From Macrostomum lignano (lineage: Eukaryota), in assembly GCA_002269645.1 (NCBI GenBank), contig NIVC01001175.1, positions 124,001 through 188,000 of the forward strand: a stretch of DNA of 64,000 bases, given 5' to 3'. A model generated the notes under the pieces. That model was not told the origin of the DNA and made no database searches. It saw only the letters and a program-made list of their open reading frames with translations. A program made the position numbers and the translations under genes. Positions 1 to 52,907 of the stretch are shown one piece after another (positions within the stretch are counted from its first letter, which is position 1; each line of letters starts with the position of its first letter).

Positions 1-1460
<1,460 letters not shown>

Positions 1461-4679: not shown

Positions 4680-5690
4680 TTAACAAATTCCTTGGGTATC
4701 ATTTTGCATTCTCACAAAGTACGAGTACAGTCTAAGAGTTACGTTTTCAAGCATGCCACTGCTGAAAGTAAACTTCCAAACAGAGCCCGGTTCTCCTGGG
4801 CACTCGGGGCAGCAGTAGATCGTGCGCTTGCTGCTTCCAGCCCGGTAGCAGATGCGACAGCGCTTTGTTGGCCTTGGCTGGCTGTCCCGTGGCGTGATCT
4901 TCTTTGGGAAATGCGAATTCACAGGACCGGCTGTCTGAGCAGCCTGAACGGCAGTCGCTGGTCGCCTCCTGCTCCTTCCAGTGCGCTCCACCAGTTCCCG
5001 AATGCTGGCCTCCAAAAACTTAGCAAATGTTTTTTGTCCATCGCGTTGCGAATCATCTGCGTACATATGTGTAAACCGAGCTTTAAAAACCACTTTTTCG
5101 TTTTCCTACCTGGCAGATGGGGCTGCATGTGGCTGTCCATTCTGTCAACACCGCCCATACACCGATTGTAGGAAAGTGCTGACCTACTCTTCTGCACCGT
5201 TGTTTCTACTCCTCCTCGAACAATTCGTTGGGTCTGAACCTTCTCAGCCGCCTCTTTGGTGTCCAGCAAATACAGCGTCTTCAATCCACTCTCCTTTCTT
5301 TCGACGATATTTACAGCCAACACACGGTCTTTGCGCATGAAGGCAACATCGTTAGGTGGAACATACAGCTCTCTGAGTTCAACCGGAACGCATCAGTCAG
5401 CTCGGACCGTACAAGTCAGGTGCGTTCCTTGAGCCAGAAGGTACTCCGACAGCCGATAGGATCCGAACCACTTGTCGACGAAGATGCGGTAGCCTTGGTG
5501 CAGCAGATGGTAGCAGAGCTCGACAACAACTTTCTTGCTGAAAGACAGGGTGTCTCCTTGCAATGGTTCATCAAACCGGCGATTCTCCTCTGGGCTTGAG
5601 TGGACACGAAAGTTGTACAGGTAGCCAGTTGCCGCCTCACAAGCACAATTACAACTTTATGCCATACTTTGCCCGCTTCGTTGGAATACC
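4680..5690 (-). mobile_element. piggyBac-family transposase remnant (PGBD4-like DDD domain + C-terminal Cys-rich domain), inactive
   Basis: Minus-strand motifs in order: IPTKRAKYGIK, EAATGYLYNF, GYRIFVDKWF...THLTCTVR, YNRCMGGVDRMD...RKTKKWFLKL, and HFP...KRCRICYRAGSSKRTIYCCPECP. In-frame stops and a frameshift near 5040. No TTAA/TIR found. Confidence 0.9.
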
Positions 5691-6702
5691 TCGACCGCAG
5701 CTACGACCTGAAACAACGAACACAGCGATTGAGGAAAGCCGGCTACGTGGTACAACGGAGACTAAAACACTCCAGGCTCCCAAAGAAGATACAGGCCAGG
5801 GTCGTCGAAGCCTGCGTGGAATCTACCGCCCTCTTCGACTCAGCGATACGCCCATGGCACAAGAGAGAGATAAAAAACTACAAGCAAGTATCGACAAAAT
5901 ATATCGGCACATCTGGAGCAACAAAACAAAACAGCCTTTACGCGAGATGGAAGAACGGGGAGTGAACATGTTCGAAGTGCGTAGACAACTACAAGTAAGG
6001 AGCATCGAAACTAAAATAGAAATCAGAACGCTGGAAAGGACCGGCCACCTACTCCGTATGGAGAACTCCCGGATCACGAAGCAGGTAGCTCTAGGATGGC
6101 CAAAGAAGAAATTACCAAGGACGACAGCAAGAAAGCGCAAACAAACAACCATCGATTACTGGCGAAAAGTAATAAGAAAAGCTGGATACGAACCGGACGA
6201 CATCGAGCAGATCGCAAGAGACCGAGGATCTTGGAAAGCGGTAATCAAAGAAAGATTGGAACACATAACAAAATGAGAAGAGATGAAAGCGATGAACAAG
6301 AACACGGTCATGCCAAGGGACCAGACAGGACGTCAAACAGAGGACAGATACTGCACCATCTGCAACAGAGAGTTCAAGACTCACACGGGTCTGAAGATTC
6401 ACAACACCAGGATGCATCGAGAACAAAGAGAAGAGGAGAAGAAGTGCCCAAGATGCGGAGACATCCTAAACAACAAAGCCAGCGAAACGAACCACCTGAA
6501 GACCTGCAAAGGCGCCCCGAAAGAGACATGCCCGTACTGTCTCCAGCCCAGAAGCGCCAGCAACATGGCGAGGCACATACGCACCTGTGCGCAGTACAAC
6601 GACTTACAAACAGGATACCAACAAGAGGAAGAGGACCAAGACGCCGACACGACGGACAGGCCTGAACCCACCGAAGCACCGAGAAGAGCAAGACAAATTT
6701 AG
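5686..6702 (+). mobile_element. 5'-truncated non-LTR retrotransposon (RTE-like) ORF 3' end: post-RT thumb region plus C-terminal zinc fingers
   Basis: RLKHSRLPKKIQARVVEACVES..LFD...W, IDKIYRHIW, LERTGHLLRM, ARDRGSWKAVI, then CTIC...H....H, CPRC...H...C, CPYC...H...C. Frameshift in the A-run near 5875; in-frame TGA at 6274-6276. Confidence 0.8.
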
Positions 6703-7126
6703 AAAGACACCGGAGAGTTTGCACCGCAGAAAACCAATGAGTGGCATGCCTCTTAGGAGGTCGATTGGCCATACAAGAAAAGACAAGGCAAGCAACAGAC
6801 TCTTCCAATTGTTATGGGAGATTGATGGACCTGGCCAGGAAAAAGCTGCACTGACGGAGTTGGACCAGGATTTGCATGAATTCCTCAACTACCGCAGTTG
6901 GGCCATCCAACTCACAAGATTCGTCTTCTGATATGAAGGCCTCTTCATCATCAGCCCTCATTATGTCGGAAATCGATTGATTGTCTGTTATGACTAGTAG
7001 ATACTGTACTTTAAGAATGATCTAATTCAGTCGCAAATAATAGTTTATGAACGCTTTGATTTATACTTTTTCTTAGACTAATACATTCTTACCAGACTCC
7101 TGAAAGCCAGCTATCTAGTCGAAGAC

Positions 7127-8118
7127 ATTAGCACCTCTTGTGAGCTTTGGAATCAAAGCCTCCCTATAGGCCATAGCTTAATCCATATCTCTCCATTCGA
7201 TTCTTGACCTACCAAAAACTTCCAAACTGACCTTTGGCATCTCACTGATCTCACATCTATGAGTCTTTTATAATTGAACCCTTTCCCTAGAACTTTGAGC
7301 AATTCCCCTCTTTAAACTTGAATCGAAAGCTACATATAAATCTAAGTGTACGCACTGAGGATCAGAAAAGTAATTAGGACACTTTCACAACTGGCACAGC
7401 AGCTCCGAAGTGGCGCGTCTGACCTGGGCTCGACTCATGACCAACTAAAGCAGGACACTGCATTCGTAACTCGTGAACCAGAGCATGGATGTCGAGTTAG
7501 TCCCGAAAAGGAAGCAATGCGCCGCTTTCACTGCTGCCTGCTGCATCCCTCCCTATAGAATCATCGAAAATCCTGTTTTTCTATCTAGACCCCAGAGGGA
7601 AAATAATAAATAATAATCATTGATTACACCTGTCCATATGGGAAGATGTGCAACCGACAGCTCAGCCGCTGCTATTGCGCGGCTCATCTGAAGACTGCGT
7701 ACGGCTGTTCAGTCCAATGACTGGGGGGTCGCCACACACACCCTCAGTTATCCCAGCTAATGCTGGCACCCATTTAACAGCTGGGTGAGCTGAAGCAATT
7801 GCAGAGTTAAGTGCCTTGCTCAAGGACACAACTTGTTCTAGTGGGATCGGGAGTCGAACCCCGGACCTTCAAGTCGTGAGTTCGACGCTCTAACCACTAG
7901 GCTAAAAACCCCAGTGGGATAATATGGGATAAAAGGGGATCTATGGCAATTTAAAGCTTCAGAACACCGGCGACAGAGTTTTTACCGGTTTTTAACATGA
8001 GTTCCTCAATGGCATACCTACTAGGCATTGGAATGCCAAGTACTACCGAAGACTAAATCAAAAAATCCAGAATGCTGGAACATGAAATCAGTTTTTAATG
8101 TTTGGTCAGATTGTAAGT
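7127..8118. repeat. Segmental duplication, copy 1, right block (paralog 15733-16730)
   Basis: Near-identical sequence; ORFs 7346-7558 and 15952-16164 translate identically; both copies contain the same SINE. Confidence 0.95.
7600..7912 (-). mobile_element. tRNA-derived SINE (family 1), full length
   Basis: Reverse complement has A box TAGCCTAGTGG and B box GGTTCGACTCC, a CORE-like centre (tgtgtccttgagcaaggcacttaac...cagctgttaaatggg) and an AT-rich tail. Flanks ccccagaggga (7590-7600) / ccccagtggga (7909-7919) look like a TSD. Confidence 0.9.
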
Positions 8119-8687
8119 CAGATTGTATTTTAATGGTAGAACTATTTTTACTTTAGAAATAAAAACTTCCGTGTCATAAGCTGGGTTGGACACCGCCTGA
8201 ATGAAGATCAGCTTGAAAAAGGCTCGTAGATTTAAAGATGTTTTAATACAAAACTGCCTACTTCCAGTAGTTTAAGTAGAACAGGAAAGATAATATTATC
8301 TTAATTAGGCTTGTTTAAAAAACGTTATTTCAATTAAAAAGCTGTACTTAGGGATATCTGGCAAATTAGAGTTTTTTAGATTAGCTGGACCAATGTGGTG
8401 CAGCAAGAATACGGCAGGAATGCGGGATTGCTTGAGTTCACACAGTTACAGTGCCCCCCTTACTTGGCACTGAAGCACTGGTCATTTGGTCATTTGGCCA
8501 TAGACATCCGCAGGAGGCATGTCTTGGCGCGCTCCAATAGGTCAGTTCCGCTGTGCCCTGACTCTGCACCACTTTAGTGCAGAAAAAACAACATTAGTAG
8601 AGAATGAGAGTACTAAACAAGTACAAAGAGTACTAAAATTTCAAATAGTTGAACTTTTTCTGTTTGTTGAAATAGCTGATTCTGTCT

Positions 8688-8894
8688 TTAGAAGCTGCGC
8701 AGCAGGCCGGCGACTGGTCGGTGTTGCCGGTGGAGCAGCTGTAAGAGGACGGACAGGAGCTGCTGCACACGCTACAGCCGCCGATGTATTGCTGCAAAAT
8801 AGAATTCAATGCGAGCAGCAGGTCAGCCATGCAGTGTCCCTATGCCATTTTGATAGATTAGGAGGCTTGAAATACTAATGAAACTGCCTACCGT
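8688..8894 (-). pseudogene. Ly6/uPAR-like pseudogene fragment (exon 3 + intron 2 only)
   Basis: QYIGGCSVCSSSCPSSYSCSTGNTDQ, then an internal deletion removes the CN motif and most of the GPI signal and shifts the frame. The intron matches intron 2 of the 20532-21076 gene. Exons 1-2 are absent except the last codon of exon 2. Confidence 0.85.
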
Positions 8895-8935
8895 ATCAGT
8901 GCACAATCACTCGTAAAGTTTGCTTCCGGCCTGCC

Positions 8936-11900
8936 CCGACCATCACTCCGAATCTCTCCTGACATTCACTCCGAATCTCTCCTGACATTCACTCCGAATC
9001 TCTCCTGACATTCACTCCGAATCTCTCCTGACATTCACTCCGAATCTCTCCTGACATTCACTCCGAATCTCTCCTGACATTCACTCCGAATCTCTCCTGA
9101 CATTCACTCCGAATCTCTCCTGAAATTCACTCCGAATCTCTCCTGACATTCACTCTGAATCTCTCCTGACATTCACTCCAAATCTCTCCTGACATTCACT
9201 CCGAATCTCTGCTGACATTCACTCCGAATCTCTCCTGACATTCACTCTGAATCTCTCCTGACATTCACTCCGAATCTCTCCTGACATTCACTCCGAATCT
9301 CTGCTGACATTCACTCTGAATCTCTCCTGACATTCACTCCGAATCTCTCCTGACATTCACTCTGAATCTCTCCTGACATTCACTCTGAATCTCTCCTGAC
9401 ATTCACTCCGAATCTCTCCTGACATTCACTCTGAATCTCTCCTGACATTCACTCCAAATCTCTCCTGACATTCACTCCGAATCTCTGCTGACATTCACTC
9501 CGAATCTCTCCTGACATTCACTCTGAATCTCTCCTGACATTCACTCCGAATCTCTCCTGACATTCACTCCGAATCTCTCCTGACATTCACTCTGAATCTC
9601 TCCTGACATTCACTCCGAATCTCTCCTGACATTCACTCCGAATCTCTCCTGACATTCACTTAGAGTATCTACTGACGTTCACTCCGAATCTCTCCTGACA
9701 TTCACTCCGAATCTCTCCTGACATTCACTCCGAATCTCTCCTGACATTCACTCCGAATCTCTCCTGACATTCACTCTGAATCTCTCCTGACATTCACTCC
9801 GAATCTCTCCTGACATTCACTCCGAATCTCTCCTGACATTCACTCCGAATCTCTCCTGAAATTCACTCCGAATCTCTCCTGACATTCACTCTGAATCTCT
9901 CCTGACATTCACTCCAAATCTCTCCTGACATTCACTCTGAATCTCTCCTGACATTCACTCTGAATCTCTCCTGACATTCACTCCGAATCTCTCCTGACAT
10001 TCACTCTGAATCTCTCCTGACATTCACTCCAAATCTCTCCTGACATTCACTCCGAATCTCTGCTGACATTCACTCCGAATCTCTCCTGACATTCACTCTG
10101 AATCTCTCCTGACATTCACTCCGAATCTCTCCTGACATTCACTCCGAATCTCTGCTGACATTCACTCCAAATCTCTCCTGACATTCACTCCGAATCTCCT
10201 GACATTCACTCCGAATCTCTCCTGACATTCACTCCGAATCTCTCCTGACATTCACTCCGAATCTCTGCTGACATTCACTCCAAATCTCTCCTGACATTCA
10301 CTCCGAATCTCCTGACATTCACTCCGAATCTCTCCTGACATTCACTCCGAATCTCTCCTGACATTCACTCCGAATCTCTCCTGACATTCACTGTGAATCT
10401 CTCCTGACATTCACTCCGAATCTCTCCTGACATTCACTCTGAATCTCCTGACATTCACTCCGAATCTCCTGACATTCACTCTGAATCTCTCCTGACATTC
10501 ACTGTGAATCTCTCCTGACATTCCCCCAAATCTCTCCTGACATTCCCTCTGAATCTCTCCTGACATTCACTTTGAATCTCTTGACATTCACTCTGAATCT
10601 CTCCTGACATTCACTCTGAATCTCCTGACATTCACTCCGAATCTCTCCTGGCATTCACTCCGAATCTCTCCTGACATTCACTCCGAATCTCTCCTGAAAT
10701 TCACTCCGAATCTCTCCTGACATTCACTCCGAATCTCTCATGACATTCACTCCGAATCTCTCCTGACATTCACTCCGAATCTCTCCTGACATTCACTCCG
10801 AATATATCATGACATTCACTTCGAATCTCTCCTGACATTCACTCCGAATATATCATGACATTCACTCCGAATCTCTCCTGACATTCACTCCGAATATATC
10901 ATGACATTCACTTCGAATCTCTCCTGACATTCCTCCGAATCTCCTGACATTCACTCCGAATCTCTCCTGACATTCACTCCGAATCTCTCCTGACATTCAC
11001 TCCGAATCTCTCCTGACATTCACTGTGAATCTCTCCTGACATTCACTCCGAATCTCTCCTGACATTCACTCTGAATCTCCTGACATTCACTCCGAATCTC
11101 TGCTGACATTCACTCCGAATCTCTCCTGACATTCACTCTGAATCTCTCCTGACATTCACTCCGAATCTCTCCTGACATTCACTCCGAATCTCTGCTGACA
11201 TTCACTCCAAATCTCTCCTGACATTCACTCCGAATCTCCTGACATTCACTCCGAATCTCTCCTGACATTCACTCCGAATCTCTCCTGACATTCACTCCGA
11301 ATCTCTGCTGACATTCACTCCAAATCTCTCCTGACATTCACTCCGAATCTCCTGACATTCACTCCGAATCTCTCCTGACATTCACTCCGAATCTCTCCTG
11401 ACATTCACTCCGAATCTCTCCTGACATTCACTGTGAATCTCTCCTGACATTCACTCCGAATCTCTCCTGACATTCACTCTGAATCTCCTGACATTCACTC
11501 CGAATCTCCTGACATTCACTCTGAATCTCTCCTGACATTCACTGTGAATCTCTCCTGACATTCCCCCAAATCTCTCCTGACATTCCCTCTGAATCTCTCC
11601 TGACATTCACTTTGAATCTCTTGACATTCACTCTGAATCTCTCCTGACATTCACTCTGAATCTCCTGACATTCACTCCGAATCTCTCCTGGCATTCACTC
11701 CGAATCTCTCCTGACATTCACTCCGAATCTCTCCTGAAATTCACTCCGAATCTCTCCTGACATTCACTCCGAATCTCTCATGACATTCACTCCGAATCTC
11801 TCCTGACATTCACTCCGAATCTCTCCTGACATTCACTCCGAATCTCTCATGACATTCACTCCGAATCTCTCCTGACATTCACTCCGAATCTCTCCTGACA

Positions 11901-12078
11901 TTCACTTCGAATCTCTCCTGACATTCACTCCGAATATATCATGACATTCACTCCGAATCTCTCCTGACATTCACTCCGAATATATCATGACATTCACTTC
12001 GAATCTCTCCTGACATTCCTCCGAATCTCCTGACATTCACTCCGAATCTCTCCTGACATTCACTCCGAATGTCTCCCG
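8936..12078. repeat. 23-bp satellite array (ctgacattcactccgaatctctc), about 3.1 kb
   Basis: Well over 100 tandem units, with higher-order internal duplication. Confidence 0.98.
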
Positions 12079-12493
12079 ACTATCAGTGCAAATTTTTTCG
12101 AAAATTAACTTTACAGCGTGCCAAACTCTACGAAACAGTATTTTTTAACTTTTCTGAAGGTGTCTTAAATTTTATTTAAAAGTCAGCCTGTCTCTTTGGT
12201 ATTGTATTTGGTTGGTTGACAAGAAATTATACGAAAAATTAAATAGCTAAAAGATTATGCTTGCAAGAGACTATTAGAGAGGATAAATTATTATGAGGAA
12301 AAATTTAAATCCAAGTAATTAAACTTAATCGTGAAACAAATTCAACGCTGCCAAAGAGTAAAAAAACTGGATGATTGATTCGTGTAACAAAGTTGATCTT
12401 CAGTATCAGGGAACGCTACGAGCATATTAAAGTTATTTCGAGAATATTTCTTGGCGTTACTTTCTCTCCAACTCTCCAGTTTGCTTGCTGCTT

Positions 12494-13081
12494 TTAGAAG
12501 CTGCGCAGGGCAGCGGCCATCAGGAGCGGCACAGTCAGCGTCAGAGGAGCGGCAGCGCGAACAGCACCGAAGGCGGAGTTGCACTGGTCGGTGGTGCAGT
12601 TGGTGCAGGTGTAATAAGACGGGAAGATGCCAATGCAGGCGCCGCAGTCGCCAGTGTAGGCCTGAGAATGCGAGTGCGGTGAGAGCTCAGCTGCTTTGGA
12701 TGGGGCCAAAAATTCTGAGACAGACTCAATCAGCTCATGCATTTACTACTCACAGTACTGCTGAAATTGGCTTTATAGGTCGTAGGCGAATGGGTATGAT
12801 ATCGCACAATGCTTATCTTCTTGCAGGTGGTGACGGCGCTGCCGCACTCCACTACAGTGGGGGTGCCGCGGAGACCTTCAATGCCCTCATGGCCATATAC
12901 CAGACAGCTGATGGCGTGTCCGACACCTGCGTGTGAGCAGTTTTAGCAGATGATATTCAAATTCAGTTTATTTTATTGGCAGTACAAGAAAACTGCGTAT
13001 TTCACATGCTTCAGTCAGCTTACCAACTAAGGCGGCCAGGACGCTGAGTCCCAGGAGAATCGAGTTGGTCTTCTTCAGCAT
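12494..13081 (-). CDS. Secreted GPI-anchored Ly6/uPAR (three-finger)-like protein, 132 aa, apparently intact; exons 13081-13024, 12926-12754, 12661-12494
   Basis: Signal peptide MLKKTNSILLGLSVLAALVG. Phase-1 and phase-0 GT-AG introns keep the frame. 8 Cys ending CTNCTTDQCN, then hydrophobic tail SAFGAVRAAAPLTLTVPLLMAAALRSF*. Kozak-like gccaccaaaATG. Confidence 0.88.
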
Positions 13082-13434
13082 TTTGGTGGCGTATTCAGCA
13101 GTTTCTGTGGCAATGAGGCGACTATGAAGAGGAGTGTGAAACCTAAATCGGGCCCCAGAATCCCGAGAGTGGTGTGGCTTTTTATGCAGATTGAGAACAT
13201 GGGGATGGGGTGACTGCAGGGGTGGCTGTTAGGGATAGAATCCCCGAAATTTTTGCCCACCTGTGCGATGGCCGGCTTGCCAACTAAGGGGGGATTTTGT
13301 GTCCATGGCAACTAGACTGACTCAGATCCCGCTCCTAGCAACCCAAAGAATTCATCTATTGGATGGAAGTCGCTTGAGCAGCGTGTGGTATGGAAGACTT
13401 CAATCCTCCTAGCTGAGCAATTCTCTCAAAACTT

Positions 13435-13878
13435 CTTGTGACTGTCACTCAAAACTCACTTGTGACTGTCACTCAAAACTCACTTGTGACTGTCACTCAG
13501 AACTCACTTGTGACTGTCACTCAAAACTCACTTGTGACTGTCACTCAAAACTCACTTGTGACTGTCACTCCAAGCTTCTTGTGACTGTCACTTCAAGCTT
13601 CTTGTGACTGTCACTCAAAACTCACTTGTGACTGTCACTCCAAGCTTCTTGTGACTTTCACTCCAAACTCACTTGTAAGTGTCATTGCAAGCTTCTTGTG
13701 ACTGTCACTCCAAACTCACTTGTGACTGTCACTCAAAACTCACTTGTGACTGTCACTCCAAGCTTCTTGTGACTGTCACTCCAAGCTTCTTGTGGCTGTC
13801 ACTCCAAACTCACTTGTGACTGTCACTCAAAACTCACTTGTGAGTGTCACTCCAAGCTTCTTGTGACTGTCACTCCAA
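13435..13878. repeat. 24-bp minisatellite (ttgtgactgtcactcaaaactcac / ...ccaagcttc)
   Basis: Tandem units with two alternating variants. Confidence 0.95.
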
Positions 13879-13887
13879 CCATCACAA

Positions 13888-14317
<430 letters not shown>

Positions 14318-14864
14318 GCAAGACGGACCCTAACCGATGGCGTGCTGCTTTAAAAGTCCTGACTATCTTTGTGTGCATCATTCAGTTCTCAAACAAGCAG
14401 CACTGACCGTGAGCAGTGTGTTGCAGGCTACGCAGGAAGCAGTTGACAGAACAATAGGGAAGCATCTCTTAACTGGTAGCCATGGCTACCTTGAGGGAGA
14501 CGGAGAGAATGAGAGAGGGAGAGAGGGAGAGAGGGAGAGAATGAGAGAGAGAGAGAGGGAGAGAGGGAGAGAGGGAGAGAGGGAGAGTGGGAGAGAGTGG
14601 GAGAGTGGGAGAGTAGGACAGAGAGCTGCGCCTCTCCAGCCCCCCCTCCCACGTTCAACTCTGTGCATGCATCGCTTTGTCGGGTAAATGCGAAAGTGGA
14701 TCTTAGCCAAATCAGTTGCTACTTTCGCTGATGATGCATTTGACGTGAGATGGAATGAATGCAGACAATGAGTGAAGAGCATTGTGCATTAAACTTAAAT
14801 ATCAGGCAAAAAATAAAAGGCACCGCAGACACCGTAGAAACAGTTTTTAACAATCGTTGAAAAC

Positions 14865-15065
14865 CTCTCCTGACATTCACTCCGAATCTCTCCTGACATT
14901 CACTCTAAATCTCTTCTGAAATTCACTCCGAATCTCTCCTGACAGTCACTCCGAATCTCTCCTGACATTCACTCCGAATCTCTCCTGACATTCACTCCGA
15001 ATCTCTCCTGACATTCACTCCGAATCTCTCCTGACATTCACTCCGAATCTCTCAAGACCATCACT
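14865..15065. repeat. 23-bp minisatellite (ctgacattcactccgaatctctc)
   Basis: Short array at the position equivalent to 2126-2650. Confidence 0.95.
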
Positions 15066-16204
15066 CCTTTCAATTTCATCACTATCGCGATCCAGGAGAC
15101 CAACGAAGAAAATGTCCCAGTCAGAAAAGGACTTGACATTGCTAGTCCGCTATGCTAAAAATGGTTTGTCTCTAGTTCAGGTAGGTAGGTAAATCGGTAG
15201 GCGGCAGGAGCGGCACGGCGGCTTTCTCCCAGCCTGCATGGTTGCTATGACAACGTGGTAGGATGAGAGACTCCACTGTTCTCACCCAAACCGCGTGCCC
15301 CCAGCACTCAACAGTTTTGTCAGTGAACAAGCTCCCAGCTGCGTACTCAGCCCTCTGTCAGAGGCTTTGTTGGGGAATGAGTCGTTAATCCGCCGTTTCT
15401 ATGGGCAGCCTGGCAGGGCTCGCTTAACTCCCCTCCCCACTAGCAGCAGCTCCTGGCCCCTTCCATTTCCATTGCTTAGGGCTCATTAAAGACATGAAAG
15501 CTCACTAAAAGTACTTTTATTTTAGTAACTTTGCAAATGGATTGGTGTTGGCAGAAGTTTGGATGAAGTCTGTTAAAGCAGATAGTTTAAGTTGAGCCTT
15601 TACAATGTGGACTAGCAATCTGCGCCGCTCCCCTCTCTCGTGTTGGGGGAGGCAATATTATGGGGGAAAGTAATATTTTTTGAATAACCTACATGTAATT
15701 TTGTATCTTTAACAATATAATATAGTCTCAGAGATTAGCACCTCCTGTGAGCTTTGGAATCAAAGCATACCTATAGGCCATGGCTTAATCCTATCTCTCC
15801 ATTCGATTCTTGACCTACCAAAAACTTCCAAACTGACCTTTGGCATCTCACTGATCTCACATCTATGAGTCTTTTATAATTGAACCCTTTCCCTAGAACT
15901 TTGAGCAATTCCCCTCTTTAAACTTGAATCGAAAGCTACATATAAATCTAAGTGTACGCACTGAGGATCAGAAAAGTAATTAGGACACTTTCACAACTGG
16001 CACAGCAGCTCCGAAGTGGCGCGTCTGACCTGGGCTCGACTCATGACCAACTAAAGCAGGACACTGCATTCGTAACTCGTGAACCAGAGCATGGATGTCG
16101 AGTTAGTCCCGAAAAGGAAGCAATGCGCCGCTTTCACTGCTGCCTGCTGCATCCCTCCCTATAGAATCATCGAAAATCCTGTTTTTCTATCTAGACCCCA
16201 GAGG

Positions 16205-16518
16205 GAAAATAATAAATAATAATCATTGATTACACCTGTCCATATGGGAAGATGTGCAACCGACAGCTCAGCCGCTGCTATTGCGCGGCTCATCTGAAGA
16301 CTGCGTACGGCTGTTCAGTCCAATGACTGGGGGGTCGCCACACACACCCTCAGTTATCCTAGCTAATGCTGGCACCCATTTAACAGCTGGGTGAGCTGAA
16401 GCAATTGCAGAGTTAAGTGCCTTGCTCAAGGACACAACTTGTTCTAGTGGGATCGGGAGTCGGACCCCGGACCTTCAAGTCGTGAGTCCGAAGCTCTAAC
16501 CACTAGGCTAAAAACCCC
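16205..16518 (-). mobile_element. tRNA-derived SINE (family 1), duplicated with the segment
   Basis: Near-identical to 7600-7912, with the same flanks. Confidence 0.9.
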
Positions 16519-16731
16519 AGTGGTATAATATGGGATAAAAGGGGATCTATGGCAGTTTAAAGCTTCAGAACACCGGCGACAGAGTTTTTACCGGTTTTTA
16601 ACATGAGTTCCTCAATGGCATACCTACTAGGCATCCGAATGCCAAGTACTACCGAAGACTAAATCAAAAAATCCAGAATTCTGGAACATGAAATCAGTTT
16701 TTAATGTTTGGTCAATTGTAAGTCAGATTGT

Positions 16732-17003
16732 AACTGGTACTTGAAGCAGGTGGTGACGCTGCTGCCGCACTCAACGGCTAGAATTGAGCCACCAGCGATG
16801 CCCGAGTAGGTGTACACCAGGCAGGTGATGACGTGTCCCGCACCTGTTGATCAAAAAAATTCAGTTGATATTTACGACGTAATATCGAAAGACATCGATT
16901 CATTTTTCTAGCACTAGCATGCAGATCGAACAGCCGCATCTTACCAACTAGAGCGGGCCAGGACTAGAATAGCCAAGCAGTTTGAGCTGGTTGCGTGCCG
17001 CAT
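16732..17003 (-). pseudogene. Ly6/uPAR-like pseudogene fragment (exon 1 + 5' part of exon 2)
   Basis: Exon 1 (17003-16945) is 59 nt, one extra C relative to phase 1 (could be a homopolymer sequencing error). Exon 2 from 16843 reads GAGHVITCLVYTYSGIAGGSILAVECGSSVTTCFKY and is cut at about 16732 by the duplicated block. No exon 3. Confidence 0.85.
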
Positions 17004-18265
17004 TGTCAATTGCTGACTGCGAGTCACCTGATGGACAAAGTGTAGTGTTTAAAGACAAATCAAGCGATTTGTGGGAGTTCCTAAATGGAGCAGACGGCTT
17101 TAAATACACATTGACTGAATCGTGTACAGCTCGGAATTCTCCGGATTCCAGATTTCAACACTGGGAGCGAAAGGCAGGAAGCTTCACATTGAAGGTTTTA
17201 AATTTTAAAGCTAAGATCGAATTGCGCTGAAATTTTGTTGAAATACATGCAATTAAAATACAGGCTTTCGGACTGCTCCAAAACTGCTTTTAAAATCACT
17301 CGCAATGATTTACTATATAGTTTCTTGTTGCACATTAGAAAGAAGCCAAAAATCTTCCGAGCTATTCAATAAAATGCTTGAAATAATTTCTTCATGTGAA
17401 TGTCCATGATACTACTTTTGTACGCAGTAGCATGCGTGCGCAAATATTCTAGATTTGAACTGGTTTAACGGCTTTTTTCACTATAAAACTTTCACAACCC
17501 TCAGATACAAAAAATTTTCCACACCTCCACACCTCTACATCTCCATATTCTCCAGATTGGAAAAGGGGGTCCACGGACATTCGACTTTCAAGAAGCAAGC
17601 TCAGACACAAGATCTACGCAGGTACACGCACTTATGCACACGCTCACACAGGGTGTACATCGTCCCAAACTTTCAAATCGTCAGGCGAATGCGTTGTCCT
17701 ACGTTGCGTTTCATGCGCTCTCGTCCCATTTCTCTTAGGTCTTTTTGTTTGATGAGTCGCATCTGCCGGCGGCTCTCTAGCTATCTACTGTGACAGCGAG
17801 GCTCTCGCTTGAAAAGCTGGGAACAGGCCGCGAAGATCTCTAAATAAACTTACCTGAAGTGTTTCTGAATTACGTCGTATGCTGGCACTCCACTGCAGGT
17901 GGTCTTATTGTAGTTCTCTCCCTATCCAGACCTTCAATAATAAGTGACAGAAAATCTGAGGCTGTTTCATTGTTGTTAGCAACGCTGAGATTTGCAGTAT
18001 GCTTTTGTAAAAGCCTGACAGCTAGGCTAATTTCTTTTAAAGGTAGTCGCTTTCCTTAGTTTTCTACCTAAGCTTTATTGCTTCACTTAATTGAAGTATT
18101 CTTGACAGGTCTATTTTTAGCAAGAATTGTAACAGCTATTTCAGCCACGGTACAGTATTAGTTAGTACTAATATCAAGTAAGATCATGTAACATGTTGAG
18201 ATTTCACTGCATGTAGCTTACTTTTGATGGAAACAAAATCTAGATATCAATATCAATGCAGGAGT

Positions 18266-19855
18266 AAGTACAGTCTTAAGTACAGTACTCAAGTACAGCC
18301 TCAAGTACAGTACTCAAGTACAGCCTTAAGTACAGTACTCAAGTACAGCCTCAAGTACAGTACTCAAGTACAGCCTTAAGTACAGTACTCAAGTACAGCC
18401 TCAAGTACAGTACTCAAGTACAGCCTTAAGTACAGTACTCAAGTACAGCCTCAAGTACAGTACTCAAGTACAGTACTCAAGTACAGTACTCAAGTACAGC
18501 CTCAAGTACAGTACTCAAGTACAGCCTCAAGTACAGTACTCAAGTACAGCCTCAAGTACAGTACTCAAGTACAGCCTCAAGTACAGTACTCAAGTACAGC
18601 CTCAAGTACAGTACTCAAGTACAGCCTTAAGTACAGTACTCAAGTACAGCCTCAAGTACAGTACTCAAGTACAGCCTTAAGTACAGTACTCAAGTACAGC
18701 CTCAAGTACAGTACTCAAGTACAGCCTCAAGTACAGTACTCAAGTACAGCCTCAAGTACAGTACTCAAGTACAGCCTCAAGTACAGTACTCAAGTACAGC
18801 CTCAAGTACAGCCTCAAGTACAGTACTCAAGTACAGCCTCAAGTACAGTACTCAAGTACAGCCTTAAGTACAGTACTCAAGTACAGCCTCAAGTACAGTA
18901 CTCAAGTACAGTACTCAAGTACAGTACTCAAGTACAGCCTCAAGTACAGTACTCAAGTACAGCCTCAAGTACAGTACTCAAGTACAGCCTCAAGTACAGT
19001 ACTCAAGTACAGCCTCAAGTACAGTACTCAAGTACAGCCTTAAGTACAGTACTCAAGTACAGCCTCAAGTACAGTACTCAAGTACAGCCTTAAGTACAGT
19101 ACTCAAGTACAGCCTCAAGTACAGTACTCAAGTACAGCCTCAAGTACAGTACTCAAGTACAGTACTCAAGTGCAGCCTGAAGTACAGTACTCAAGTACGG
19201 CCTCAAGTATAGTACTCAAGTACAGCCTCAAGTACAGTACTCAAATACAGCCTCAAGTACAGTACTCAAGTACGGCCTCAAGTACAGTACTCAAGTACAG
19301 CCTCAAGTACAGTACTCAAGTACAGCCTCAAGTACAGTACTCAAGTGCAGCCTCAAGTACAGTACTCAAGTACGGCCTCAAGTATAGTACTCAAGTACAG
19401 CCTCAAGTACAGTACTCAAGTACAGCCTCAAGTACAGCCTCAAGTACAGTACTCAAGTACAGCCTCAAGTACAGAACTCAAGTACAGCCTCAAGTACAGT
19501 ACTCAAGTGCAGCCTGAAGTACAGTACTCAAGTACGGCCTCAAGTATAGTACTCAAGTACAGCCTCAAGTACAGTACTCAAATACAGCCTCAAGTACAGT
19601 ACTCAAGTACGGCCTCAAGTACAGTACTCAAGTACAGCCTCAAGTACAGTACTCAAGTACAGCCTCAAGTACAGTACTCAAGTGCAGCCTCAAGTACAGT
19701 ACTCAAGTACGGCCTCAAGTATAGTACTCAAGTACAGCCTCAAGTACAGTACTCAAGTACGGCCTCAAGTACAGTACTCAAGTACAGCCTCAAGTACAGT
19801 ACTCAAGTACAGCCTCAAGTACAGTACTCAAGTACAGCCTCAAGTACAGTACTCA
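18266..19855. repeat. Alternating 12/13-bp minisatellite (ctcaagtacagc + ctcaagtacagta; 25-bp dimer)
   Basis: About 1.6-kb tandem array. Confidence 0.97.
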
Positions 19856-20531
19856 CGTGCAGCCTGAAGTTATCGTATCATTTTAAAGAGATTTTTTAGA
19901 GTCCACCATAGATCTTGTTTATGATCTTTGGAGTCCACTAACTAATCTAGCGCGATCGCCGTCTTTATTGTCTATGGCCACGACTTGCTAACCCCGTCGC
20001 TCTGTTTACAGAACCAACCTTCGCGAATATTTCATGAAAATATCGGCTGTTATCCTCTATGATATTTAAACGGCACCCTCTGATTTCCAATTTACGCCCT
20101 TAAACATGGGTATTAATATACTATTGACAGAAAATAACAAATTAAAAATAAAAAGAATAAATTAAAGACGAAAAACAGATCTATTGTGCCTTTCAGGTCT
20201 AATCTATTAAGAAAAACTGTGATTTTTGTCAAATGAAGGATCAACTTTATTTAATATCTATGAAATAGCGGTAGTCTCTATAGCGCACACAGATTGATCA
20301 TCTAAAAACATTTATTGTGCTACAGAAGTACTTTGATTAAATACGAGTCGTACTTATAAAAAACTTATCAAAATCATCAAGGTTTTGTTGTCGAAATTAG
20401 TTCATAAAAAAAGAGAAATTAAAGAGTGTAAACTTTCGGGCAACTGGTCAGCTGGTACAGTGTTCCCTACAGACTCTGATGAAGAGTATTGTTAAATCTG
20501 CAATTTGCGGTCGCACATGCAGTTGAATTGT

Positions 20532-21076
20532 TTAGAAGCTGCGCAGCATAGCGGCGATCAGGAGCGGCAGAGCCAGCGTCAGCGGCACGGCGGCGCGCAC
20601 GGCACCGAAGGCGGAGTTGCACTGGTCGCTGGCGCAGGCAGAGCAGCCGTACGAGGATGGCAAGAGGCTGCTGCACGTGCCACAGCCGCCGACGTATTGC
20701 TGCAAAAGAGAATTCAGTGCAAGCAGCAGGTCAGCCATTTTGATAGATTAGAAGGCTTGAACTACTAATGTAACTGCCTACCGTGCCGGTGTACGATTCC
20801 GCGAAAGTGATGCTCGATGCCGCTGTCGTAGTGGTGACGGAGTACTTGAAGCAGGTGGAGTAGCTGCTGCCGCACTCCAGAGCCAAGGGAGTGCCACCGG
20901 TGATGCCGCTGTAGCTGTACACCAGGCACTTGATGGCCTGGCCAGCGCCTGAGGGAGTGACGAAGGTGAAACGGTGCGAGTCCCGCAGTGCAACTCAAGC
21001 ACAACTTCCCTAATCACTTACCGATCATGGAGGCCAGGACCAGCAGTCCCAGGCAGATGTAACTGGACTTGTTCAT
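20532..21076 (-). CDS. Secreted GPI-anchored Ly6/uPAR (three-finger)-like protein, 129 aa, apparently intact; exons 21076-21022, 20948-20782, 20699-20532
   Basis: Signal peptide MNKSSYICLGLLVLASMIG. Same intron phases and same 168-nt last exon as the 12494-13081 gene. 8 Cys ending CSACASDQCN. GPI-type tail SAFGAVRAAVPLTLALPLLIAAMLRSF*. Confidence 0.9.
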
Positions 21077-21171
21077 ATCGGTGCTGCTTGGTAAAGCTTG
21101 ACTGATTCTGGGCGATTAATAGATGCAGGAGAAGGCGCGCTCTGGAGCGGAGAAGCGCGAGTTTGGGCGGC

Positions 21172-21179
21172 TTTATATA
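21172..21179 (-). promoter_or_regulatory. TATA box candidate for the 20532-21076 gene
   Basis: TATATAAA on the minus strand about 96 nt upstream of the ATG, in a GC-rich context. Confidence 0.5.
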
Positions 21180-21765
21180 GACTTGCTGGGGCGGCACGCT
21201 CCCGCGGGAAAACGTGCGGCTGAGGGTGGGTTGGTCAGAGACTGCAAATCCTGCGTTTTAGGGCAGGTTGGGGTGTAGGGTAGAGTCTTAGGGCCCTGTT
21301 AGTAGCACCTTTGTATCTTCTTACTCCGTTGCTACCGCGTTCCTAGCAACTGGCGCAACCCCTCCTCCTACTTAAATGCTTTGATTGTGTGAGAATGCTT
21401 TGATGCTTTGATACTTTGAACACAACCACTACGTCTGCGCTACGGGGCCAGAGAGAAGTGGGTGAGGGGATGAAGAACGCCTTGAGTGCAGATAGCAGGC
21501 ATTTTTAAAATGAAAAAATGAATACTTGCACAATGCCGCGAGAAACACAATACCGCTGGGCCAAAACTTTCTTATTAGGGGGGGGGGGGTTGGCTGAGAT
21601 TGAATACTACTGGCATTGGATACCATGGCAACGCAACTTCTCTTCTGTATTCTCTGCTCCCTCTCTGCTGTCTGCCTCTCTTTTACTCATTCTGTGAGTC
21701 TTTTAATCTCTTCCAAAGGCGCATTGCTGTCGAAGTAGTTTAGCCATTCTCAAAACTAGTTTGAC

Positions 21766-23874
21766 AATCACTTCGATCTGTATGAGGATCACTCCAATCT
21801 GTGTGGGAGAGTCACTCCAATCTCTGTGTGAGAATCACTCCAATCTGTGTGAGAATCACTCTAATCTCTTTGTGAGAATGACTCCAATCTGTGTGGGAGA
21901 ATCACTCCAATCTCTGTGTGAGAATCACTCCAATCTGTGTGAGAATCACTCTAATCTCTTTGTGAGAATGACTCCAATCTGTGTGGGAGAATCACTCCAA
22001 TCTCTGTGTGAGAATCACTCCAATCTGTGTGAGAATCACTCTAATCTCTTTGTGAGAATGACTCCAATCTGTGTGGGAGAGTCACTCCAATCTCTGTGTG
22101 AGAATCACTCCAATCAGTGTAAGAATCACTCCAATCTCTGTGTAAGAATCACTCCAATCTCTGTGTCAGAATCACTCTAATCTGTGTGAGAATCACTCTA
22201 ATCTCTTTGTGAGAATGACTCCAATCTGTGTGGGAGAGTCACTCCAATCAGTGTGAGTCGTGTGAGAATCACTTCAATCAGTGTGAGAATCGCTCCAATC
22301 TCTGTAAAAGAATCACTCCAATCTCTGTGTGAGAATCACTCCAATCTGTGTGAGAATCACTCCAATCTGTGAGAATGAGATCTAGAGTGTGAGAATCACT
22401 CTAATCTCTTTGTGAGAATGACTCCAATCTGTGTGGGAGAGTCACTCCAATCTCTGTGTGAGAATCACTCCAATCAGTGTGAGTCGTGTGAGAATCACTC
22501 CAATCAGTGTGAGAATCACTCCAATCTCTTTGTGAGAATGACTCCAATCTGTGTGGGAGAATCACTCCAATCTGTGTGAGAATCACTCTAATCTCTTTGT
22601 GAGAATGACTCCAATCAGTGTGAGAATCACTCCAATCAGTGTGAGAATCACTCCAATCTCTGTGTGAGAATCACTCCAATCTGTGTGAGAATCACTCTAA
22701 TCTCTTTGTGAGAATGACTCCAATCTGTGTGGGAGAGTCACTCCAATCTCTGTGTGAGAATCACTCCAATCAGTGTGAGAATCACTCTAATCTCTGTAAA
22801 AGAATCACTCCAATCTCTGTGTGAGAATCACTCCAATCTGTGTGAGAATCACTCCAATCTCTGTGTCAGAATCACTCCAATCTCTGTGTGAGAATCACTC
22901 CAATCTGTGTGAGAATCACTCTAATCTCTTTGTGAGAATGACTCCAATCTGTGTGGGAGAGTCACTCCAATCTCTGTGTGAGAATCACTCCAATCAGTGT
23001 GAGTCGTGTGAGAATCACTCCAATCAGTGTGAGAATCACTCCAATCTCTGTAAAAGAATCACTCCAATCTCTGTGTGAGAATCACTCCAATCAGTGTGAG
23101 TCGTGTGAGAATCACTTCAATCAGTGTGAGAATCGCTCCAATCTCTGTAAAAGAATCACTCCAATCTCTGTGTCAGAATCACTCCAATCTCTGTGTGAGA
23201 ATCACTCCAATCTGTGAGAATGAGATCTAGAGTGTGAGAATCACTCCAATCAGTGTGAGAATCACTCCAATCTCTGTAAAAGAATCACTCCAATCTCTGT
23301 GTGAGAATCACTCCAATCTGTGTGAGAATCACTCTAATCTCTTTGTGAGAATGACTCCAATCAGTGTGAGAATCACTCCAATCTGTGTGAGAATCACTCT
23401 AATCTCTTTGTGAGAATGACTCCAATCTGTATGGGAGAGTCACTCCAATCTCTGTGTGAGAATCACTCCAATCTGTGTGAGAATCACTCCAATCTGTGTG
23501 TAAGAATCACTCTAATCTGTGTGTAAGAATCACTCCCAATCTCTGTGTGAGAATCACTCCAATCTGTGTGTGAGAATCACTTCAATCTGTGTGTAAGAAT
23601 CACTCACAATCTCTGTGTGAGAATCACTCCAATCTGTGTGAGAATCACTCCGATATGTATGTGAGAATCCTCCAATCTGCGTGAGAATCACTCCAATCTG
23701 TGTGAGAATCACTCCGATGTGTATGTGAGAATCCTCCAATCTGCGTGAGAATCACTCCAATCTGTGTAAGAATCATTCCAATCTTCGGGAGAATCACTCC
23801 AATCTCTGTGTGAGAATTACTCCAATCTGTGTGTGAGAATCACTCCAACCTGCCTGAGAGTCACCCCAATCTGT
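21766..23874. repeat. 21/23-bp composite minisatellite (gagaatcactccaatct[ct]gtgt)
   Basis: About 2.1-kb tandem array with higher-order units. Confidence 0.97.
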
Positions 23875-28985: not shown

Positions 28986-29231
28986 GGGTTCGATTTCCGA
29001 TCCCACTGGAACAATTTGAGTCCCTGAGCTGAGGACACTTAACTCTGCATTGCTTCAGTTCACCCAGCTGTAAAATGGGTGCCAGCATTAGCTGGGGTAA
29101 TTAAGGGTGTGTGGCGACCCCCCAGCAGTCCTTGGACTGAACAGCCGTACGCAGCCTTCAGATGCGCCGCGCAATTGCTGCGGCTGAGCTGTCAGTAGCA
29201 CGTCTGCCATAAGGGCAGTTGTAATAAAAAA
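28986..29231 (+). mobile_element. tRNA-derived SINE (family 1), 5'-decayed
   Basis: B-box remnant ggttcgatttcc, cacttaactctgcattgcttcagttcacccagctgtaaaatggg core, shared 3' body. Confidence 0.88.
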
Positions 29232-30787: not shown

Positions 30788-31021
30788 TTTTTAGAGCGTC
30801 GAACTCCCGATTCCCGATCCCACTGCAAGAATTTGTGCTGTAAAATGGGTGCCAGCATTAGCTGGGGTAATTGAGGGTGTGAGTGGCGACCCCAGCAGTC
30901 CTTGGACTGAACAGCCGTACGCAGCCTTCAGATGCGCCGCGCAATAGCTGCGGCTGAGCTGTCGGTTGCACGTCTGGCCCAATTGGGCAGATGTAACCAG
31001 TTATTATTATTATTATTATTT
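30781..31021 (+). mobile_element. tRNA-derived SINE (family 1), internally deleted head
   Basis: ttagagcgtcgaactc head remnant, shared body, (ATT)n tail. Confidence 0.9.

Positions 31022-33216: not shown

Positions 33217-52907
<19,691 letters not shown>

Follow-up and report, generated by a model that had tools for sequence, protein, structure and literature searches.

The 64-kb stretch of Macrostomum lignano contig NIVC01001175.1 analysed here (hereafter the window) carries two functional and two dead members of a small gene family that evolves fast and encodes probably lipid-anchored Ly6/uPAR-like surface proteins. This reading draws on the observed gene structure, identity to annotated models derived from RNA-seq, constraint, remote homology and rearrangements. 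All family copies, the intact genes A and B and the broken psi1 and psi2, are located on the minus strand, and tblastn found no further members in the window. An earlier note on this DNA had described two intact three-exon genes and two broken paralogs; splicing and the tblastn search of the window confirm both counts. The cluster is real and tidy but ordinary in kind, and both genes are already publicly annotated.

Gene structure, annotation and constraint

Genes A and B have the same three-exon organization (Table 1). All four of their introns have GT...AG boundaries, exon 2 of gene B being flanked by an AG acceptor and a GT donor. Intron 1 is in phase 1 and intron 2 in phase 0 in both genes, so the intron phases are shared, as the earlier note had claimed. 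The mature parts of the spliced products have the cysteine spacing C-19-C-6-C-28-C-2-C-9-C-2-C-4-C-N (gene A) and C-17-C-6-C-28-C-2-C-9-C-2-C-4-C-N (gene B), an exact match to the spacing listed in that note, including its CxxCxxxxCN ending. TATA-like boxes precede genes A and B and psi2, and we infer that they act as promoter elements.

Table 1. Features of the gene cluster and its surroundings (positions in the window).
Feature	Position	Strand	Description
Gene A	12494-13081	minus	three exons, 399-nt CDS, 132 aa
Gene A exon 1	13024-13081	minus	58 nt; start codon and signal peptide, ends in phase 1
Gene A exon 2	12754-12926	minus	173 nt
Gene A exon 3	12494-12661	minus	168 nt; GPI-like signal and stop codon
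Gene B	20532-21076	minus	three exons, 390-nt CDS, 129 aa
Gene B exon 1	21022-21076	minus	55 nt; start codon, signal peptide MNKSSYICLGLLVLASMIG, ends in phase 1
Gene B exon 2	20782-20948	minus	167 nt; signal cleavage region, Cys1-3, most of long loop 2
Gene B exon 3	20532-20699	minus	168 nt; Cys4-8, Asn, GPI-like signal, stop codon
TATA-like box (gene B)	21169-21180	minus	CTATATAAAGCC; 93-104 nt upstream of the ATG
TATA-like box (gene A)	13176-13187	minus	before the ATG, motif and distance as in gene B
TATA-like box (psi2)	17096-17107	minus	motif and distance as in gene B
psi1	8688-~8925	minus	end of exon 2, intron 2, exon 3 remnant (tblastn)
psi1 exon 2 remnant	to 8892	minus	last ~30 nt
psi1 intron 2	8792-8891	minus
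psi1 exon 3 remnant	8688-8791	minus
psi2	16732-17003	minus	exon 1, intron 1, 5' part of exon 2 (tblastn)
psi2 exon 1	16945-17003	minus	59 nt
psi2 exon 2, 5' part	16732-16843	minus	~112 nt, ends at junction with S'
Segment S	1028-8127		duplicate of S'
Segment S'	13887-16732		duplicate of S
23-bp tandem array	8943-12080		~138 copies, between gene A and psi1; core CACTCCRAATCT
Related arrays	2110-2651, 13435-13878, 14865-15067, 21777-23874		related to the 23-bp array
25-bp array	18266-19862		unrelated to the 23-bp arrays

The spliced product of gene B is 100% identical to GenBank PAA71300.1 (BOX15_Mlig014353g3), and that of gene A is UniRef A0A1I8HIG0, also contained within PAA71299.1. The GenBank PAA/BOX15 gene models derive from a genome-guided RNA-seq transcriptome (PMC5730564); therefore, the two genes are not chance open reading frames, and the splicing proposed for them in the earlier note agrees with these models. 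Both proteins are present in GenBank and UniProt as hypothetical proteins. Some paralogs were named by UniProt pipelines as 'UPAR/Ly6 domain-containing' or 'Protein quiver', and other names in the family are inconsistent (DUF3707, variant-specific surface protein). Neither an expression pattern nor a phenotype was found for the window genes.

The window copy of gene B (locus L003) differs from each of its homeologous loci, L002 and L004, by one synonymous change in 390 coding nucleotides; in the non-coding part of the locus, 29 changes in 905 nt separate L003 from L002. For gene A, the homeologous comparison yields three synonymous and three non-synonymous codon differences. Between pairs of paralogs, dN/dS is 0.54-0.90 in the mature domain versus 0.20-0.46 in the GPI signal. 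Divergence is fast in the mature domain, whereas signal peptide, cysteine scaffold and GPI signal are retained.

It is hardly credible that genes A and B are non-functional relics or annotation artefacts of a repeat-rich region. The region does consist of approximately 40% tandem repeats, two neighbouring copies are clearly dead, and several database models in the family are mis-spliced (P0017, P0018 and P0022). However, the reading frames are open, the splice sites are canonical, the TATA-like boxes are conserved and the gene models originate from RNA-seq (PMC5730564), all of which argues against it. Homeologous copies, moreover, show far fewer differences in coding than in non-coding sequence, and none at the amino-acid level in gene B.

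Relationship to the Ly6/uPAR superfamily

The putative membership of the A and B proteins in the Ly6/uPAR (LU) superfamily rests on remote homology. In an exhaustive search of 1.8 billion proteins, the family profile reached P0024 (E=1e-5) and P0025 (E=5e-5). The latter is a Pfam-QVR protein (34.4 bits, cut-off 27.3), and its nearest relative is the tardigrade 'Protein sleepless' P0030. Comparison of the family with QVR-type proteins by hhalign gave 96% probability for full-length sequences; for the mature domains alone it gave 78% probability, E=1.7e-5 and a score of 32.0, while 200 column shuffles of the mature domains yielded a mean score of 11.4 (SD 2.5, maximum 20.9). Quiver/Sleepless-type Ly6/uPAR proteins are the only outside relatives that could be detected, and among the 1.8 billion proteins the family seems restricted to Macrostomum, in line with the lineage-specific subfamily that had been suggested before.

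None of the window proteins passes the Pfam gathering threshold of PF00021, PF00087, PF17064, PF21947 or any of their relatives. The gene A protein and the paralogs have no Pfam matches at all; the best match of the gene B protein is Toxin_cobra-type (E=0.36, 11.5 bits versus a cut-off of 25.3). Against QVR itself (PF17064, gathering threshold 27.3 bits) A, B and the paralogs have no match. Hence, the initial assignment to the Ly6/uPAR family stands as far as remote profile homology and gene architecture are concerned, but not at the level of Pfam thresholds. Profile searches of PDB sequences revealed no three-finger protein at a meaningful E-value; this result carries little weight, because a bona fide QVR protein also matches nothing there. 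The AlphaFold2 models are of low confidence (mean pLDDT 45.2 for the full length and 48.8 for the mature domain); the mature-domain model, with six beta strands in three hairpins, is unreliable, and neither model is good enough to establish the three-finger fold. A Foldseek search of PDB with the models gave no significant match (best E=3.4); among the non-significant ones are uPAR, SLURP-2 and two snake three-finger toxins.

The mature domain of the window proteins has 79-82 residues, within the 60-90 expected of an LU domain, and eight cysteines, versus the canonical ten. According to the alignment to P0030, the missing ones are Cys 2 and Cys 3. All four core bridges could still form, and LU proteins that have lost the loop-1 disulfide are well known (PMC6600238). 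The window proteins end in C-x2-C-x4-C-N, in contrast to the adjacent Cys 8 and Cys 9 of the canonical CCxxxxCN. However, P0025 and P0030 also have these two cysteines spaced, as C-x-C-x4-C-N, and the Cys 8-9 distance therefore varies within the superfamily. The variant cysteine pattern reported earlier, with eight cysteines and a CxxC ending, is thus present but less unusual than implied. The asparagine directly follows the last cysteine, and N-S-A does not form an N-x-S/T sequon. All seven core clusters of M. lignano that were aligned (P0001-P0006 and P0016) have C-N-S-A without variation, and more distant family members have CNGA or CNTG instead.

In the archetypal LU gene, the first of three exons encodes the signal peptide, an intron in phase 1 follows, the domain is divided within loop 2 and exon 3 carries the GPI signal; such genes form small clusters with lineage-specific expansion, and their products carry a non-glycosylated asparagine directly after the last cysteine (PMC6600238). 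Genes A and B match this exon plan, with intron 2 placed within loop 2, though off its tip.

An alternative is that a Macrostomum-specific family of cysteine-rich GPI-anchored proteins with its own fold resembles LU proteins by convergence, that is, by having a short, secreted, cysteine-rich domain with a Cys-Asn at its C-terminal end, ahead of the anchor site. The absence of Pfam matches above threshold and of PDB sequence matches would fit such a family, as would the low-confidence structure prediction (pLDDT 45-49) with no significant Foldseek match, the mere eight cysteines with unusual CxxC spacings and the inconsistent pipeline names. We consider this origin unlikely, since the mature-domain profile-profile score lies about 8 SD above composition-matched shuffles and the blocks that align, namely N-terminal xCxxY, (E/D)CGxxxxxC(F/Y)K and CxTDxCNxA, are hallmarks of LU proteins. 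The agreement of the exon-intron plan with the LU archetype (PMC6600238) also speaks against it, and the lack of PDB sequence matches is shared by the bona fide QVR protein.

For a Ly6/uPAR-like protein, the eight cysteines would map to the four core three-finger disulfides (plesiotypic 1-5, 4-6, 7-8 and 9-10), which corresponds to a predicted pairing of 1-3, 2-4, 5-6 and 7-8 in the family numbering. The optional loop-1 bridge (2-3) would be absent, and two residues would be inserted between Cys 8 and Cys 9. Exon 1 is predicted to encode a cleavable signal peptide, and exons 2 and 3 a cysteine-rich domain of about 80 residues followed by a C-terminal hydrophobic signal.

The assessment of signal cleavage and GPI anchoring relies on visual inspection and hydropathy. 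Both termini are hydrophobic (KD(9) maxima 2.4-3.1), positions -3/-1 and the omega site are occupied by small residues, and in A and B the omega triplet of small residues, N-S-A, is followed by a spacer and then by a hydrophobic C-terminal end. A signal peptide and a GPI-like tail are therefore present by these measures, as expected for the GPI-anchored proteins that the earlier note had postulated. At the conserved asparagine (Asn-Ser-Ala), a GPI anchor would most likely replace the C-terminal signal. It is quite improbable that the proteins are LU-like but not GPI-anchored, with the tail acting as a transmembrane or retention segment, or with the proteins being secreted. Arg-Ser-Phe at the end of the tail and a hydrophobic core of just about 15 residues would suit this reading, and the anchoring is judged from sequence layout. 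On the other hand, the tail begins directly after the small-residue triplet and is followed by no cytoplasmic domain, which with the short spacer makes a classic GPI signal layout; moreover, no other part of the protein is as well conserved among the paralogs, and the tail is encoded in exon 3, as in LU genes (PMC6600238). By analogy with other GPI-anchored LU proteins, the anchored protein would sit on the outer membrane leaflet, where its variable loops could bind a receptor, channel, recognition partner or other membrane or extracellular protein.

Duplication, decay and tandem arrays

Segments S and S' belong to a tandem segmental duplication carrying an A-type gene. They are 98% identical over 1015 bp and 81-94% identical elsewhere, and S has an extra 3.8 kb (3301-7113) relative to S'. 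A further A-type copy, A2, is located 3.1 kb left of the window. It and gene A share an identical tract of 420 nt that runs from exon 1 to the end of intron 2; over the 200 nt upstream of this tract they diverge by about 10%. The gene for P0003 is a mosaic, in which the 5' flank and exon 1 are 96% B-like and the sequence thereafter is about 80% A-like.

Both remnants are truncated. In psi1, the 23-bp array has taken the place of the 5' side; the exon 3 remnant has Cys7 changed to Gly, and an internal deletion of about 60 nt takes out Cys8-Asn and most of the tail and causes a frameshift. Exon 1 of psi2 is one base longer than the 58 nt of gene A, so the frame is lost. The psi2 region also lacks 825 bp that are present in the homeologous contig NIVC01001388.1, where the counterpart keeps three exons, has lost the ATG and contains an in-frame stop.

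Segmental tandem duplication produced A and A2, copies decay, as in psi1 and psi2, recombination between paralogs created the mosaic P0003 gene, and gene conversion left the identical A/A2 tract. The pseudogenes, the copy-number differences between homeologous contigs, the mosaic paralog and the gene-conversion tract support the birth-and-death evolution proposed in the earlier note. Its further proposal, that satellite arrays flanking each copy could drive unequal crossing over, finds no such support. Tandem arrays occupy about 35-40% of the whole window (about 41% in bases 1-24000 and about 34% in bases 24000-64000); as they are abundant throughout, the arrays next to the gene copies represent local background. 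Those rearrangement breakpoints that could be mapped fall within intron 1 or exon 2 or around the gene body, and none is in the arrays.

Comparison with known systems

The Ly6/CD59-like tegument proteins of parasitic flatworms (Schistosoma SmLy6 and SmCD59; Fasciola FhCD59 and FgLy6) come from the same phylum. They are GPI-anchored, single-LU-domain proteins of multigene families ending in Cys-Asn (PMC8763315; PMC3812095; PMC4492491), and are defined by at least 10 cysteines within 120 aa, C1-XX-C2 and C10-N (PMC8763315). The window proteins have the Cys-Asn motif but neither the 10 cysteines nor C1-XX-C2, and no protein search, including that of 1.8 billion proteins, found a trematode homolog.

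Vertebrate Ly6 clusters (human 8q24, 19q13 and others) are likewise tandem and lineage-specifically expanded, with fast-evolving loops. Their genes are also built of three exons, the signal peptide being followed by a phase-1 intron and the GPI signal being encoded in the last exon (PMC6600238), whereas intron 2 of the window genes is in phase 0 and interrupts the descending strand of loop 2, not the tip. Canonical vertebrate members have CCxxxxCN, unlike the window proteins. LU members with eight cysteines include short-chain three-finger snake toxins and the BMPR2/ACVR2 ectodomains, loss of the 2-3 disulfide being a known variant (PMC6600238). Neither these nor the vertebrate Ly6 proteins have detectable sequence similarity to the window proteins.

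Judging from sequence, Quiver/Sleepless Ly6 proteins (PF17064; Drosophila quiver/sleepless; P0030) are the closest family, of which the window proteins are nevertheless not strict members. The latter fall below the Pfam QVR cut-off and have eight cysteines instead of ten, the N-terminal CxxC and its partner being absent; with 28 residues between cysteines, their loop 2 is far longer, and their loop 3 is short. Both groups are small proteins with a signal peptide and a single LU-type domain. In both, Cys 8 and Cys 9 are non-adjacent (CxC in P0025 and P0030, CxxC in the window proteins), and both share a C-terminal xTDxCNxA followed by a GPI-like tail.

Gene structure and decayed copies

Splicing by hand on the minus strand between 8 and 22 kb yields two intact three-exon genes, A and B, and the window also holds two broken paralogs, psi1 and psi2, so that the cluster described in the earlier note is found where it had been placed. 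All introns of A and B are bounded by GT...AG; intron 1 is in phase 1 and intron 2 in phase 0. Both spliced products carry the claimed cysteine spacing, C-19/17-C-6-C-28-C-2-C-9-C-2-C-4-C-N, with a first gap of 19 residues in A and 17 in B. In A, B and psi2 the ATG is preceded, at a distance of 93-106 nt, by a TATA-like box, (T)ATAWAAAGCC.

Positions of the family members and of two groups of repeats in the window
Feature	Position	Strand	Remarks
Gene A	exons 13024-13081, 12754-12926, 12494-12661	minus	hand splicing; 132 aa
Gene B	exons 21022-21076, 20782-20948, 20532-20699	minus	hand splicing; 129 aa
psi1	8688-~8925	minus	end of exon 2, intron 2 and damaged exon 3 retained
psi2	16732-17003	minus	start codon present; exon 1 of 59 nt; exon 2 ends after ~112 nt
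Related 21-24-bp arrays	2110-2651, 8943-12080, 13435-13878, 14865-15067, 21777-23874		core CACTC(C)RAATCT; all in one orientation
Short dispersed element	7600-7861, 16206-16467, 28986-29225, 30837-31022, 59325-59490		five copies, 86-92% identical

Gene B encodes a protein with 100% identity to PAA71300.1 (BOX15_Mlig014353g3) of Macrostomum lignano, and the A product is UniRef A0A1I8HIG0 and is contained in PAA71299.1. Since the GenBank annotation comes from a genome-guided RNA-seq transcriptome (PMC5730564), both splice models agree with RNA-seq-derived gene models; the expected spliced transcripts are thus found at the level of gene models, not of junction-read counts. Among the database proteins P0017, P0018, P0022 and P0021, several (P0017, P0018, P0022) are mis-spliced or frameshifted versions of gene A, and in one model of 700 aa a family member is joined to a reverse-transcriptase-like ORF.

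Both genes are under constraint, as follows from the few coding changes between homeologous copies. Gene B in the window differs from each of its copies on two other contigs by one synonymous change in 390 coding nt, and the B region has 29 changes in 905 non-coding nt relative to NIVC01001388.1 (hereafter contig 1388, homeologous or allelic to the window). Gene A and its copy on contig 1388 differ in three synonymous and three non-synonymous codons.

A tblastn search of the window with the A and B products found only two further loci, psi1 and psi2. Exon 1 of psi2 is one base longer than the 58 nt of gene A, and the frame is therefore lost. The locus reflects an 825-bp loss relative to contig 1388, where the psi2 ortholog keeps three exons, lacks the ATG and has an in-frame stop; the gene was therefore dead before the 825-bp loss. 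In exon 3 of psi1 the seventh cysteine is replaced by glycine, and a deletion of ~60 nt takes out the Cys8-Asn pair and causes a frameshift; a 23-bp array stands in place of the 5' part. The two remnants could be read as halves of one gene split by an insertion. The simple version of this reading is rejected, because the psi2 ortholog on contig 1388 has its own, different intron 2 and exon 3, and because psi1 has a B-like intron 2 and is placed in the next unit of a segmental duplication.

Copy turnover and the surrounding repeats

The window matches contig NIVC01001175.1 of assembly GCA_002269645.1 at 100% identity, with a coordinate offset of 124000 between window and record. The cluster extends beyond what the earlier note described, with four consecutive annotated family genes on this contig: PAA71297 (P0004), PAA71298 (A2), PAA71299 (A) and PAA71300 (B). 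The A-type paralog A2 lies at -3651..-3067 in window coordinates, i.e. 3.1-3.7 kb left of the window. Homeologous or allelic copies of the region are present on NIVC01001388.1 and NIVC01000978.1. Such contigs are expected in the sequenced line, DV1, which carries additional large chromosomes and in which duplicated blocks with an identity of at least 95% add up to 180 Mb (PMC5730564). The family content of contig 1388 is P0003, P0002, one A-type gene and B, and hence copy content differs between the homeologous regions.

Segment 13887-16732 duplicates segment 1028-8127 and is part of a tandem segmental duplication that carries an A-type gene. A 3.8-kb insertion (3301-7113) in the second of these segments is absent from the first (junction at 15720) and from contig 1388. 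The ORFs inside the insertion are 137-237 aa long, and the two that were scanned, 5563-6276 and 6096-6665, have no Pfam match.

Genes A (12494-13081) and A2 (10001-10588 of its locus, L005) show no difference in the 420 nt that span exon 1, intron 1, exon 2 and intron 2, and their flanks are ~10% or more diverged; the identical stretch looks like a recent gene-conversion tract. The gene for P0003 on contig 1388 (positions 9680-10780 of locus L001) is a recombinant of B- and A-type paralogs with a breakpoint in intron 1. It shares 96% identity with B in the 5' flank with the promoter region, in exon 1 and in the first part of intron 1, and from there on, 3' flank included, it is ~80% identical to A; a B-type array lies upstream and an A-type 23-bp array downstream. 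Between paralogs, dN/dS is 0.54-0.90 in the mature domain versus 0.20-0.46 in the GPI signal. Between A and B, dS is only 0.27 in the GPI-signal part versus 1.03 in the mature part, and this inequality suggests mosaic histories. The birth-and-death evolution proposed for the cluster, now with gene conversion, is well supported by the duplication, the decay of psi1 and psi2, the conversion tract, the recombinant P0003 gene and the copy differences between contigs.

The earlier note also held that satellite arrays flank each copy and could drive unequal crossing over. The first part stands: arrays flank each copy, and most share a unit of 23-24 bp whose core is CACTCCRAATCT. Arrays abound throughout the neighbourhood, with tandem arrays covering ~41% of bases 1-24000 and ~34% of bases 24000-64000, and a genome-wide cover of 15% (PMC5730564). 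None of the mapped rearrangement breakpoints falls inside an array; they are genic instead. Given arrays throughout the window and breakpoints within genes, satellite-mediated unequal crossing over is a possible driver of copy turnover but has no specific support.

Several further features were noted in the window. Two long ORFs on the minus strand, 47413-48813 and 51546-52907, match different parts of the Pfam SK_channel model (each E~5e-12). Both probably belong, as exons, to a single SK channel gene at a distance of ~26 kb from the Ly6-like cluster. SK channels are calcium-activated potassium channels, and in flies Ly6 proteins of the Quiver type act as potassium-channel modulators; that an SK channel gene lies near this cluster is probably a coincidence. 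A further related array (47908-48821) is located far from the cluster, inside this SK-channel region. The plus-strand ORF 26814-27731 has integrase zinc-binding and rve core domains, which indicates an LTR-retrotransposon remnant. The short dispersed element looks like a tRNA-derived SINE; ARAGORN called no tRNA genes in the window. At 40434-42529, an array of ~118 copies of the 14-bp unit TCTTCCCCTCTCCC leaves several reading frames of both strands open for 500-670 aa; these ORFs were rejected as genes, being artefacts of the repeat. The same array accounts for the GC-skew spike at 40-42 kb.

Relationship to the Ly6/uPAR superfamily

The A and B products begin with a hydrophobic N-terminus that has Gly-x-Ala ahead of a predicted cleavage site, followed by a Cys-rich domain of ~80 residues. 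A short spacer and a hydrophobic end come directly after Cys-Asn-Ser-Ala, which is the layout of a GPI signal; GPI anchoring is thus predicted, as are signal cleavage and the disulfide pairing. The gene plan matches the archetype of the Ly6/uPAR three-finger (LU) superfamily. In that archetype the signal exon is the first of three and is followed by a phase-1 intron, the exon boundary that divides the domain falls in loop 2, exon 3 encodes the GPI signal, and a non-glycosylated asparagine follows the last cysteine (Leth et al., PMC6600238). LU genes also form small tandem clusters with lineage-specific expansion (Leth et al., PMC6600238).

The proposed match to UPAR_LY6 or related Pfam families was not obtained: direct scans of A, B and their paralogs gave nothing significant, the best being a Toxin_cobra-type match at E=0.36. 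The profile comparisons fared better. An exhaustive HMMER search of 1.84 billion representatives with the family profile gave 13 matches below 1e-3, and the real relatives among them are mostly M. lignano proteins. One outside match, P0025 (E=5e-5), scores 34.4 bits on Pfam QVR, above the threshold of 27.3, and its nearest relative is a tardigrade 'Protein sleepless' (P0030); another, P0024 (E=1e-5), scores 19.5 bits on QVR. In profile-profile comparison of the Macrostomum family with the two QVR proteins P0025 and P0030, the probability is 96% for full-length sequences and 78% for mature domains alone (E=1.7e-5). The mature-domain score of 32.0 exceeds all of 200 column-shuffled controls (mean 11.4±2.5, maximum 20.9). 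The aligned blocks are LU hallmarks, namely the first cysteine, (E/D)CGxxxxxC(F/Y)K and CxTDxCNxA. According to the QVR alignment, the eight cysteines are plesiotypic Cys 1, 4, 5, 6, 7, 8, 9 and 10, and the loop-1 pair 2-3 is missing.

Structure prediction gave low-confidence models. AlphaFold2 reached a mean pLDDT of 45.2 for an alignment of six full-length sequences and 48.8 for one of 14 mature domains; the second model shows six beta strands in three hairpins but is untrustworthy. A Foldseek search of the PDB with the 14-sequence model returned no match below E=3, and uPAR, SLURP-2 and two snake three-finger toxins occur solely among the non-significant matches. With three family alignments as queries, profile searches against PDB sequences reached no three-finger protein at a meaningful E-value; true QVR proteins, used as a control, equally fail, and this negative is therefore uninformative. 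Positions 63-112 of the full-length profile (alignments A1 and A2) weakly match a Cys-containing stretch of an alphavirus E2 glycoprotein entry in the PDB (E=0.007-0.6). The match disappears once the signal peptide and tail are trimmed, and the relationship was rejected as probably due to chance.

Possible function and comparison with known families

Genes A and B probably encode surface proteins with a GPI anchor, the variable loops of which would bind a membrane or extracellular partner protein. It is a long shot that the Macrostomum eight-Cys proteins are a structurally distinct LU offshoot (no loop-1 bridge, CxxC at Cys 6/7 and 8/9, a very long loop 2), with loops that diversify fast, with shuffling and homogenisation of promoter/signal-exon modules and gene bodies among tandem copies, and with a fast-evolving recognition role at the animal surface or in fertilisation, for which Bouncer/SPACA4 would be the comparison. 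M. lignano is known for sexual conflict, and such a role would fit this species.

We found no mention of the A and B genes in the literature, and full texts and supplement sets searched by Mlig gene identifier yielded no data on expression or function. Family members are already in public annotation under uninformative or wrong names. UniProt pipelines name P0003, P0009 and P0012 'UPAR/Ly6 domain-containing protein' and P0033 'Protein quiver'; other automatic names are inconsistent with these, gene A being assigned to DUF3707 and relatives called variant-specific surface protein or major surface glycoprotein. With the present analysis, a set of "hypothetical" or misnamed M. lignano proteins gains a name and a testable function. 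The known flatworm spread of Ly6/uPAR-type proteins is widened from parasites to a free-living, transgenesis-ready model, in which GPI anchoring, localisation and knock-down phenotypes are directly testable. The locus also shows, in a small space within a neopolyploid genome, how duplication, decay, recombination between paralogs and gene conversion act together.

The working criteria for Ly6/CD59-like proteins of parasitic flatworms are at least 10 cysteines and a C1-XX-C2 motif (PMC8763315); A and B have neither, and none of the searches brought up a trematode protein. Among known families, Ly6 proteins of the Quiver/Sleepless type come closest. A and B are not strict members of that family, as they have eight cysteines versus 10, lack the N-terminal CxxC and score under the Pfam cut-off. 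The variant disulfide pattern of the earlier note, with eight cysteines and spaced Cys 8/9, is a modest variation, because LU proteins without the 2-3 bridge are already known (PMC6600238) and Cys 8/9 of QVR proteins are also spaced, as CxC. The cluster leaves the current understanding of the LU superfamily unchallenged.
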